Source: Macrostomum lignano
Taxonomy: Eukaryota
DNA: 64,000 bases
Reading direction: 5' to 3'
Assembly (NCBI GenBank): GCA_002269645.1
Contig: NIVC01003568.1
Location: forward strand, 1 to 64,000
This document shows, piece after piece, positions 27,801 through 30,800 of the stretch. The notes beneath the pieces are model-generated. The model was not told the DNA's origin, made no database searches, and worked only from the letters and a program-made list of their open reading frames with translations. Both the position numbers and the translations under genes were made by a program. Within the stretch, counting starts at the first letter, position 1. Each line of letters begins with the position of its first letter.

Positions 27801-30800
27801 CGACTGCGGCTACTACTGCCTGAGCGTGGTAGCGCTGATTGTGGTCATACAGAATGGCTTTGTGGATTGGTGAGCGCTGTTTGAGACACTGGATTAGTGG
27901 GGATTATCAGATGCCGTTAGACACTGGATTAGTGGGGATTATCAGATGCTATTAGACACTGGATTAGTGGGGGATTATCAGATGCCGTTAGACACTGGAT
28001 TAGTGGGGATTATCAGATGCTTTTTGACACTGGATTAGTAGGGATTATCAGATGTTGTTAGACACTGGATTAGTGGGGATTATCAGATGCTGTTAGACAC
28101 TGGATTAGTGGGGATTATCAGATGCTATTAGACATTGGATAAGTGGACATGTGCAAGTGGGGATACAACCTGAATCAGCATATCAGCTACTTTCTCAACA
28201 TAACAGGTACGAGTCCGTGATCTTCGTTGTGATGTACGCTCTGTACATCGTGATCATGTACTACAATGAGGCCATCGACAGGAATATTTCCGACCGCTAT
28301 CCGAGCCTGGGCACTGGCGCCTCAGCCGCAGCCGCCGCCGGAGGTGCGAGGCGCCTGGACGAGTCCAACATGGACGACGAGCGGGTGGCCATCGTGCCCT
28401 CCTCCGGTGAGGGCGGCGGCACCACCACTTATTCGCAGCTGTCTCTGGGCGCCGATAAGGGTGAGCATCGAGCACCAGAAGTACGTAGGTTTTTCAGCTC
28501 CTTGCGCGGCCACATTCACTTTAGGCTCGCGCACGAAATGTTGGCCGGGGAGAGGGGTTGATTCACGGTCATGAAGGCCAAGCCCCCAAGGCACTGAGAG
28601 TGTACATACCTGCTGTACACCCTGTGTGAGCGTGAGGGCAGCATAAGAAATTTCTAACAATCGTGCAATCTGTAGATGCAACAGACTTTTCCATAAGTTG
28701 TAGTTGTCCAATCCGACTCCGATTTTCAGAGGGCGGCGGCGAGGGCAACGTAGAAGAGTTTGAGTCTCCGTTGACCATGCCGCAGGGACTTGTCAAGCGC
28801 ATCTACTGGGTGGTTATGCTGCCATGGACCTGCGTGTTCCTGTTCACTATTCCCGACTGTCGTAGGCCCGGCCGCTGGCGCAAGTTCTTCTTCATCACCT
28901 TTATTAACAGCGTCCTGTGGATTGCCGGGATGAGTTACCTGCTGGTGTGGATGGTCTGCGCAGTGGGTAAGTTGGTTATTCAGTTAGTTAGTTAGTTAGT
29001 TAGTTAGTTAGTTAGTTAGTTAGTTAGTTAGTTAGTTAGTTAGTTAGTTAGTTAGTTAGTTAGTTGGTTAGTTAGTTAGTTAGTTAGTTAGTTAGTTAGT
29101 TAGTTAGTTAGTTAGTTAGTTAGTTAGTTAGTTAGTTAGTTAGTTAGTTAGTAAGTTAGTTAGTTAGTTAGTAAGTTAGTTAGTTAGTTAGTTAGTTAGT
29201 TAGTTAGTTAGTTAGTTAGTTAGTTGGTTAGTTAGTTAGTTATTTAGTTAGTTAGTTAGTTAGTTAGTTAGTTCGTTAGTTAGTTAGTTAGTTAGTTAGT
29301 TAGTTAGTTAGTTAGTTAGTAAGTTAGTTAGTTAGTTAGTTAGTTAGTTAGTTAGTTAGTTAGTTAGTTAGTTAGTTAGTTAGTTAGTTAGTTAGTTAGT
29401 TAGTTAGTTAGTTAGTTAGTTAGTTAATTAGTTAGTTAATTAGTTAGTTAGTTAGTTAGTTAGTTAGTTAGTTAGTTAGTTAGTTAGTTAGTTAGTTAGT
29501 TAGTTAGTTAGTTAGTTAGTTAGTTAGTTAGTTAGTTAGTTAGTTAGTTAATTAGTTAGTTAGTTAGTTTGTTTGTTTGTTTGTTAAACTAAACTCGCGA
29601 ACCATCCCCAGGTGACACCCTCGGCATCCCGGACACGGTGATGGGGCTGACCATTCTAGCCGCTGGCACATCCGTACCGGACGCCATGGCCAGCGTCTTT
29701 GTTGCGAGGGACGGTGAGAGCATGGTGACGGGGGAGCTGAATATATTGTACGAATTAGAGAGTGGCAACAAGTTCGTCGTATAGATATGCATCTGTATAT
29801 TTGCATACGTATCCATGTGCGTTGCGTGCTCAGTGGAAGGCCCAACTACTCACGAGTAGTAGAACTTTAAAATTTGAAGTTTTCGCTTGCTTGTCAGTCT
29901 CTGATGGCGTTAAGAATTAACCTTGGATAAAATTTCATCATTGCTCGAGAGAAATAATGCCAGCTCCCGTAGGAAATCGGACAATTTTTAAGTGTGGCGT
30001 TAAGTTGACGTTATTTATTTGTACGTAATCTTGAGCAGCAATGTCAAGAATTGTTTCAAAAGATTGCATAAGCTACGTGATATTTTCCGAGCTGTCTAAA
30101 AAGGTCATTTCACTTAAATGGCGAACCCCGAAATTCTTAAACTGTAAGGCTTCGGCGACATGGCCGTGTCCAACAGCATCGGCAGCAACGTGTTCGACAT
30201 CCTGGTCGGCCTGGGCGTGCCCTGGTTCATCGACACGATCATCCGGGAGCCTGGCAGCACCGTTGTGGTGAACTCGAACGGCCTAACCTACTCCACCATC
30301 ATGCTGCTGTCTACCGTTGTTTTCTTGTTCGTCGCCGTCTATCTGAACAAGATGCGGCTAGACAGGAAGCTGGGCGCCTTCTTCTTCAGTCCTTTTCTCG
30401 CCTCGCGGCGTGGACGCTCTGCCGCCGACTCACTGGCAGGTCTTTCGATGTCTGGCCATGTTCGTGCGGGCCAGCATCCTCTGATATTTTCCGCAGCAGT
30501 TCCTCACTCTCTCTCTCACTTTCGGCAAAGCTTTCAACCTTACTGTTGTTTCGAGAGGTGCCTGGGTCGGTTAGGTCCAAGCCACTCTGTTGCGAGGAGG
30601 TTTGCCCATAGACCGCGGCTGTTACGCCGAGGCTACGGGCCTCTCTCCCCCCCCCGATTCTGCTTTGCCAACCGGGTTGCTCCGGTTGCCCGCTTGGCAC
30701 CGCGTGTTGACGGCACGCTTCGTGGAGGTGCAGAATCTTGCCAAGCGGGCGCCGCCTGCCTCGTTGTCTACATCGTCTTCATCACCTTCTCCATCCTGTA

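Follow-up and report, generated by a model that had tools for sequence, protein, structure and literature searches.

The window analysed here, 64,000 nucleotides in length, is the forward strand of contig NIVC01003568.1, positions 1 to 64,000, from the flatworm Macrostomum lignano (GenBank assembly GCA_002269645.1). It contains the visible part of a gene for an SLC24-type K+-dependent Na+/Ca2+ exchanger (NCKX), the last exon of which is interrupted by a 368-bp segment with the features of a non-LTR (long terminal repeat) retroposon. On the minus strand, this segment starts with a predicted fold similar to that of the hepatitis delta virus (HDV) ribozyme. The gene was delineated by tblastn with NCKX homologs, by its translations and GT-AG junctions, and by the Pfam domain Na_Ca_ex. 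The gene, the insert and the insertion site are as follows.

26244 to 30858, plus strand: NCKX gene, the part visible in the window, with the stop codon at 30856 to 30858
26244 to 26444, 27583 to 27869, 28207 to about 28290, 28730 to 28966, 29612 to 29713 and 30149 to 30855, plus strand: NCKX exons, boundaries approximate
30149 to 30378, plus strand: last NCKX exon, 5' part, with the alpha-2 repeat and the penultimate membrane helix; acceptor AG at 30147 to 30148
30372 to 30378, no strand assigned: target-site duplication GGGCGCC, left copy of a 7-bp repeat
30379 to 30746, minus strand (sense): putative retroposon of 368 bp, with a 5' HDV-like ribozyme fold, a structured body and a (GAA)3 tail
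30379 to 30387, minus strand: 3' tail (GAA)3, preceded by TGA; on the plus strand, 30379 to 30389 reads TTCTTCTTCAG and resembles a splice acceptor
30747 to 30753, no strand assigned: target-site duplication GGGCGCC, right copy; the predicted ribozyme cleavage site is the junction between 30747 and 30746 on the minus strand
30754 to 30858, plus strand: last NCKX exon, 3' part, with the last membrane helix, the tail and the stop codon

The insertion in the last NCKX exon

As judged from its sequence, the host gene is an NCKX/SLC24 exchanger that is otherwise intact. Its conserved exons contain no stops and no frameshifts, the alpha-1 and alpha-2 motifs are preserved, and the Pfam family PF01699 (Na_Ca_ex) is matched within the interrupted exon itself. 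The best named relatives of the translation of this exon are NCKX3, 4 and 5, with 52 to 64% identity. The introns follow the GT-AG rule, and the three donors that can be placed (after 27869, 28966 and 29713) all have the form GTRAG. Most of the intronic sequence (26445 to 29611) is made up of minisatellites, including a 30-bp unit in 35 copies at 26501 to 27536 and a 35-bp unit in 7.5 copies at 27884 to 28146; an (AGTT)154 array at 28970 to 29586 begins directly at the preceding exon's GTAAGT donor.

A single open frame on the plus strand, 30151 to 30855, runs from exchanger sequence through 125 foreign codons and back into the exchanger C terminus. The exon is split after ...LDRKLGA, and the two copies of the duplication, identical in 7 of 7 positions, sit precisely at either edge of the alignment gap, an arrangement that is not due to chance. 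The 368 bp of the insert and one 7-bp copy add up to 375 bp, or 3 x 125, so that the frame of the gene is kept; it is free of stops, whereas each of the other plus-strand frames has two. An earlier, sequence-only reading of this region had described the same 375-bp interruption (368 bp plus one gggcgcc copy) as 125 stop-free, in-frame codons after LDRKLGA, and direct reading and translation confirm it. It had also held that the 5' edge of the insert lacks a GT, which sets it apart from an ordinary intron, and that the TTCTTCTTCAG end resembles a 3' splice site on the sense strand of the gene. Both statements are correct: the left junction lacks a GT, the earliest one being at 30389 to 30390, and the plus strand of the insert begins with TTCTTCTTCAG, the minus strand accordingly ending in ...CTGAAGAAGAA.

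A MAFFT alignment shows that 17 of 17 NCKX orthologs, among them those of molluscs, vertebrates, an echinoderm and mites, are gapless across the site. Their sequences follow the pattern ..W(R/K)L..(K/P)LGxx directly before it and xLxxY.. directly after it, and the 125 residues form a block private to the M. lignano sequence. When the two NCKX flanks are joined, they keep the spacing of the orthologs, and the empty site is expected to read AAGCTGGGCGCCGCCTGC. The sequence-only reading had proposed looking for the segment as native sequence in orthologs and for further copies elsewhere; none of the 17 orthologs carries it, and a second M. lignano copy is found at the protein level, in A0A1I8H7X5 (see below).

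The insert thus combines the usual features of a non-LTR retroposon, namely, a target-site duplication, a simple-repeat tail and relatives that are contiguous across the site, and the segment is almost certainly a retroposed insertion. The earlier description of the insert as foreign, antisense and retroposed is borne out by the target-site duplication, the (GAA)3 tail and the 17 gapless orthologs. Two observations suggest that the insert is young, the identity of the two duplication copies and the near identity of the second element copy. A given frame is open in 6.9% of dinucleotide shuffles of the insert (GC content, 59%), and an exonic insertion of this element in its present orientation would stay open and in frame with a chance of roughly 1 in 9. 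The absence of stops is accordingly no sign of selection; it is a mild coincidence, or else it reflects survivorship. As an insertion, the event is ordinary; what is unusual is the hairpin inserted in loop L3 of the ribozyme-like head.

The HDV-like fold and the identity of the element

The ribozyme-like fold occupies the end of the insert that adjoins the right-hand duplication. Its parts, all on the minus strand and numbered from the first nucleotide (nt) of the insert in that direction, are as follows.

30656 to 30746 (30746 is nt 1): HDV-like ribozyme fold, 91 nt, from the Rfam alignments, the checked pairs and a fold descriptor
nt 1-7 with 49-55: P1, 7 bp, GCUUGGC with GCCAAGC
nt 8-9: J1/2
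nt 10-17 with 84-91: P2, 8 bp, GAUUCUGC with GCAGAAUC
nt 18-20 with 46-48: P3, 3 bp, ACC with GGU
nt 21-28: L3 core, UCCACGAA
nt 22-23 with 56-57: P1.1, 2 bp, CC with GG
nt 29-33 with 41-45 (30702 to 30718): extra 5-bp hairpin on the 3' side of L3, GCGUG with CACGC, loop CCGUCAA, from the cmscan alignment, with the pairing checked
nt 59-65 with 72-78: P4, 7 bp, CAACCGG with CCGGUUG
nt 79-83 (30664 to 30668): J4/2 (GCAAA), with C80 (30667) as the candidate catalytic cytosine from the Rfam alignment

The 91-nt sequence is GCUUGGCAAGAUUCUGCACCUCCACGAAGCGUGCCGUCAACACGCGGUGCCAAGCGGGCAACCGGAGCAACCCGGUUGGCAAAGCAGAAUC, with the predicted structure
(((((((..[[[[[[[[(((.{{.....(((((.......)))))))))))))))}}.(((((((......))))))).....]]]]]]]]
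All 32 checked pairs are Watson-Crick, and helices P1, P2, P3, P1.1 and P4 come in the canonical 5'-to-3' order. A permissive Rfam scan of the region aligns the minus strand from 30746 to 30655 with the entire length (1-74 of 74) of the minimal HDV-like ribozyme model from F. prausnitzii (RF02682) at 22.5 bits, against a gathering threshold of 44. The HDV ribozyme model (RF00094) likewise aligns end to end with the same strand, at 25 bits against a threshold of 50; a scan at the gathering thresholds returns nothing. Taken alone, these matches would be noise. They are more than that because of their exact position, the perfect pairing of the pseudoknots that the models leave unscored and the low background of the descriptor. 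Both alignments place nucleotide 1 of P1 at 30746, the base of the insert that adjoins the duplication, and the first P1 nucleotide of HDV-like ribozymes lies immediately 3' of the cleavage site (PMC4908430). The Rfam covariance models do not score the P2 and P1.1 pseudoknots and penalise an insertion in L3. In the insert, both pseudoknots are perfect (8 bp in P2 and 2 bp in P1.1), and a C-N-A-A motif precedes the 3' strand of P2. In both models C80 aligns with the C of the consensus GGCuAA; in the L3 core, UCCACG takes the place of the consensus UCCuCG.

A fold descriptor was written with P1 of 7 bp, J1/2 of at most 6 nt, P2 of at least 6 bp, P3 of 3 bp, an L3 of 6 to 30 nt starting with N-C-C, GG after P1 and C-N-A-A before the 3' strand of P2. 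In the 128 kb formed by both strands of the window, it has a single match, at 30746 on the minus strand. The background is 0.03 matches per block-shuffled window, none of them with a P2 of at least 8 bp, and 0 of 3,000 shuffles of the insert match. The minus-strand RNA is also unusually stable (z = -3.19, with 0 of 100 shuffles as stable), compared with -1.33 when the plus strand is folded. Ribozyme head and (GAA)3 tail share a strand, at opposite ends of the insert, and this arrangement, together with the stability of the minus-strand fold, points to the minus strand as the sense strand of the element.

The main departure of the predicted structure from canonical HDV-like ribozymes is the hairpin in L3. 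The L3 core is followed by 19 nt where the Rfam models have 1 or 2 nt. L3 belongs to the catalytic core (PMC4908430), R2 ribozymes are most conserved in the P1.1/P3/L3 block (PMC3774820), and no precedent for a helix at this position in HDV-like ribozymes was found in the literature. This hairpin in the catalytic core makes the activity uncertain, and the chances that the predicted ribozyme is catalytically active appear evenly balanced.

A second copy of the repeat is apparent from the protein databases. With the whole exon translation as query, the top match is the UniRef entry A0A1I8H7X5, a 131-residue "secreted protein" from M. lignano, and not an exchanger. Its residues 23 to 89 are identical, in 67 of 67 positions, to the plus-strand translation of 30523 to 30723 (tblastn), and residues 90 to 96 (EVQNLAK) match 30725 to 30745 in a frame shifted by one base. 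The similarity ends within one codon of 30746, that is, at the same nucleotide to within 2 nt, and the sequence beyond is unrelated. This protein thus appears to represent another copy of the repeat, in a different genomic context and with the same right-hand terminus. At the protein level, the two copies do not differ over the 200 nt nearest the ribozyme end. The comparison of 30458 to 30525 with residues 1 to 22 of A0A1I8H7X5 shows indels in a central stretch with a short (GA)n/(CT)n run, and the element may have a hypervariable middle or subfamilies. No further copies of the insert are found in the 64-kb window by blastn with a word size of 7, and an exact 26-mer of the ribozyme head has 0 matches in metagenome contigs. 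Exact-protein searches of the contig index returned nothing for A0A1I8H7X5, a 232-residue open reading frame (ORF) of the window or its KCTD-like ORF.

Several established classes of element do not fit the insert. It is not a classical short interspersed nuclear element (SINE), as it has no Pol III-type head derived from tRNA, 7SL or 5S RNA; searches for such a head with Rfam (E-values up to 5 to 10) and ARAGORN gave no match. Nor is an autonomous long interspersed nuclear element (LINE) or a LINE fragment supported. Throughout the insert, the antisense frame is open (119 codons), with a stop 7 nt before the end (TGAAGAAGAA); it shows no similarity to ORF2, reverse transcriptase or endonuclease, and neither a word-index search nor an exhaustive phmmer search of 1.84 billion representatives nor Pfam yields any protein relative or family. 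A spliceosomal intron or introner is rejected as well, all 8 equivalent boundary pairs within the duplication being noncanonical.

The 5' end of the insert coincides to the nucleotide with the start of the ribozyme fold, and the second copy shares this terminus, so that the element looks complete rather than truncated; a complete element with an HDV-type 5' end is very likely. All architectural parts expected of a nonautonomous retroposon with a 5' ribozyme are present in the insert, and no others. The insert probably represents a complete, short, noncoding and nonautonomous non-LTR retroposon of the NARTc or R2-SIDE kind (SIDE, short internally deleted element). Such an element would be transcribed within a longer read-through RNA, and the HDV-like ribozyme formed by its first 91 nt would cut just 5' of its own first nucleotide, thereby creating an exact 5' end. 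The reverse transcriptase and endonuclease of a partner LINE would then copy the RNA into the genome by target-primed reverse transcription, beginning with the (GAA)n tail, and a 7-bp target-site duplication would be left. The present copy would have landed in this way, antisense, in the last coding exon of an otherwise intact NCKX gene. The insertion, its duplication and tail, the open frame, the fold with its helices, the match between terminus and cleavage site and the second copy with that terminus are observed; that the ribozyme cuts, that a LINE acts as partner, what becomes of the transcript and how the protein is affected are inferred.

Several observations weigh against such a retroposon with a ribozyme-defined 5' end. 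Both Rfam scores are far below the gathering thresholds, with an E-value of 7.4 at the scale of the whole window, and the helices are purely Watson-Crick, so that there are no G-U pairs to indicate the strand. The comparison covers a single DNA copy, which gives no covariation evidence. The descriptor was written after the candidate had been seen, with L3 allowed to extend to 30 nt; L3 length is its sole relaxed term, and relaxing it raises, not lowers, the false-positive rate. The L3 hairpin may leave the RNA inactive or make it fold differently. The second copy is known as a predicted protein alone, from M. lignano, and it implies a 1-nt deletion in the CC of L3, which may reflect a real defect in a dead copy or an indel error in an assembly of the PacBio era. 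Finally, no partner LINE turned up: the 64-kb window contains no non-LTR reverse transcriptase, and the only reverse transcriptase found there is of the LTR type. The kind of tail and the few nucleotides between stop and tail hint at the RTE clade as a candidate source of the partner.

One competitor is the label chosen in the sequence-only reading, according to which the insert is the 5'-truncated 3' end of an autonomous LINE; the ribozyme-like fold would then be coincidental. The open antisense frame that stops 7 nt before the end does resemble the end of ORF2 followed by a very short 3' untranslated region and a simple-repeat tail, LINE copies most commonly end up truncated at the 5' end, and the Rfam scores of the ribozyme-like fold are subthreshold. 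However, this frame has no protein relative, a given frame is open in about 7% of shuffles anyway, the fold begins at the terminal nucleotide against a descriptor background of 0.03 per 128 kb, and the second copy ends at the same nucleotide within 2 nt, which random truncation would not produce. A LINE fragment is accordingly improbable, and that label is not supported in view of the missing protein relative, the 5' end set by the predicted ribozyme and the terminus common to both copies. Still less can be said for a native, lineage-specific expansion of an exchanger loop or an assembly artefact. Such a segment might well be in frame and stop-free; it would not account for the perfect target-site duplication, the same sequence in another genomic context (A0A1I8H7X5), or an antisense ribozyme fold and tail. 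The segment is also absent from 17 of 17 orthologs and predicted to be disordered, and a 7-bp duplication precisely flanking the gap is not something that a chimeric assembly would create. This explanation is extremely improbable.

Another possibility is a nascent intron, that is, an insert spliced out through cryptic sites to give a nearly normal protein. Candidate donors are present at 30389, 30410, 30440 and 30464 and candidate acceptors end at 30727, 30733 and 30745, and in-frame GT..AG pairs among them would leave 4 to 30 extra residues. Yet 8 of 8 positions for precise excision are noncanonical, offering no GT-AG, GC-AG or AT-AC pair, none of the cryptic donors has the GTRAG form of the three mapped donors of the gene, and no pyrimidine tract precedes the cryptic acceptors. 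Only one new signal is strong; this one, TTCTTCTTCAG followed by T, is an acceptor at the wrong end of the insert. Removal by this route seems a poor prospect, about as improbable as a LINE fragment.

Predicted consequences for transcript and protein

The ribozyme is antisense to the gene and the NCKX mRNA carries only its complement, so that this mRNA cannot be cut by it. Because the insert and one copy of the duplication can be delimited in eight equivalent ways, its possible boundary pairs are GG..GC, GG..CG, GC..GG, CG..GG, GC..GC, CC..CG, CT..GC and TT..CC; given these dinucleotides, the spliceosome cannot remove the 375 bp precisely. Joining the TTCTTCTTCAG acceptor (cut before T) to the donor of the preceding exon shifts the reading to frame +1, with a stop after 34 codons and loss of the alpha-2 repeat. 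Part of the transcript may be lost to this acceptor-like site or through weak cryptic splicing. With precise splicing excluded and the cryptic donors not of the GTRAG type, the insert would be somewhat likely to be retained in most of the mRNA.

The peptide encoded by the insert contains 18 Arg residues and has a net charge of +14. Its maximal 19-residue hydropathy is 0.51, compared with more than 2 in the flanking helices. AlphaFold2 assigns residues 97 to 185 a predicted local distance difference test score (pLDDT) below 50, with no secondary structure, whereas the flanking helices score 70 to 81. The product would most likely carry a disordered, Arg-rich loop of 125 residues before the last helix. 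A PDB search with the interrupted exon alone gave no match. A homolog aligns with the archaeal exchanger NCX_Mj (3v5s) through the last helix, and this alignment places the insertion site in the short loop that links the last two membrane helices (TM9 and TM10 of the NCX_Mj fold). In the ten-helix NCX fold of NCX_Mj, both termini are on the outside, and the TM9-TM10 loop is cytoplasmic. By this analogy, a basic cytoplasmic loop would not break the positive-inside rule. A damaged NCKX copy could be tolerated in a recently duplicated genome.

Comparison with known systems and the rest of the window

HDV-like ribozymes define the 5' termini of the non-LTR elements R2, R4, Dong, Baggins and L1Tc and release their RNAs from read-through transcripts (PMC3774820, PMC3185411). 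They are also found at the 5' ends of the nonautonomous NARTc (PMC3383444) and the R2 SIDEs (PMC3414825). The nearest parallel is with the NARTc/L1Tc elements of Trypanosoma cruzi (L1TcRz, Pr77 region). NARTc, too, is a short nonautonomous element in which the first ~77 to 90 nt form an HDV-like ribozyme that frees the 5' end, and insertions of this group are dispersed, are not site specific and carry target-site duplications (PMC3185411, PMC3383444, PMC4035085). In contrast to NARTc, which has a poly(A) tail, an autonomous partner that shares the ribozyme and a trypanosomatid host, the flatworm element has a (GAA)3 tail and the extra L3 hairpin. Microsatellite-like tails with target-site duplications of 7 to 15 bp are usual for stringent LINE/SINE pairs in which a specific 3' end is recognised (PMC6007223).

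In R2 and its SIDEs, known from Drosophila and other animals, a 5' HDV-like ribozyme likewise sets the exact 5' end, and the SIDEs keep only this ribozyme and the 3' end (PMC3774820, PMC3414825). The highly conserved P3/L3/P1.1 core of R2 has its counterpart in the same core motif of the flatworm element. However, R2 inserts specifically into 28S rDNA and often has a long J1/2, whereas the M. lignano element is found in a coding exon, with its second copy in other flanks, and has a J1/2 of 2 nt, its length variation being in L3. Perere-3 of Schistosoma mansoni, an RTE-clade element, has twister variants at its 5' end, with target-site duplications that adjoin the cleavage site (PMC8501958). 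It is another flatworm non-LTR element that is not site specific and carries a 5' ribozyme next to the duplication (PMC8501958). It differs in being autonomous and in its ribozyme type, with the duplication contributing to P1; the fold described here is HDV-like, and its P1 lies wholly inside the element. At the level of the host gene, the insertion resembles the exonisation of antisense Alu elements and other SINEs and the in-frame insertion of transposable elements into coding exons, in that the antisense tail supplies a pyrimidine tract and an AG (TTCTTCTTCAG) and a transposable element is read as protein. This is a direct, frame-keeping insertion into an existing coding exon, however, not one in which an intronic element is recruited as a new exon.

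Should the fold prove active, processing of retroposons by HDV-like ribozymes would be known in free-living flatworms as well; the only flatworm precedent found is that of the twister variants. It would also mean that L3 tolerates a helical insertion, which would be useful for ribozyme engineering and for descriptors that fix the length of L3. For annotation, the 5' end of what looks like a "truncated LINE tail" can be a ribozyme-defined terminus. The locus offers a clean natural case of a frame-preserving transposable element insertion in a transporter gene, and redundancy in the recently duplicated genome may shelter this NCKX copy. A bolder scenario combines several steps. In it, the element would be the founder of a Macrostomum family of ribozyme-headed, protein-free retroposons, its ribozyme would be active despite the L3 hairpin and represent a new subclass of the HDV fold, and the present copy would be expressed in a working NCKX isoform with a 125-residue cytosolic loop, a transposable element domesticated in a neopolyploid. 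This combination is unlikely.

The remainder of the window contains a second mobile element, a compact, apparently intact and young LTR retrotransposon of the Ty3/gypsy type on the minus strand (46057 to 50427). Its 204-bp LTRs, at 46057 to 46260 and 50224 to 50427, are 99% identical and enclose a single ORF of 1,300 residues (46321 to 50223) with reverse transcriptase, RNase H and integrase domains. Tandem repeats make up about a quarter of the whole window, and the minisatellites and the young LTR retrotransposon fit the published description of the M. lignano genome. A weak tRNA-like match at 33575 to 33644 on the minus strand (RF00005, 23 bits against a gathering threshold of 29, not called by ARAGORN) may be a tRNA relic or the head of a SINE. 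Two adjacent plus-strand ORFs of 260 and 296 residues lie at 35633 to 37465, the first with a weak protein kinase match (E = 4.5e-4, below the Pfam cutoff). A single-ORF gene at 38962 to 39864 on the minus strand encodes a 300-residue KCTD1/15-like BTB protein (domains BTB_2 and KCTD1-15_CTD). Matches to a HECT ubiquitin ligase domain in an exon-sized ORF at 55714 to 56217 on the plus strand (a strong one, E = 1e-46) and to a rhodopsin-family seven-transmembrane receptor in an ORF at 62486 to 63001 on the minus strand (E = 1.6e-10) point to further genes in the window.

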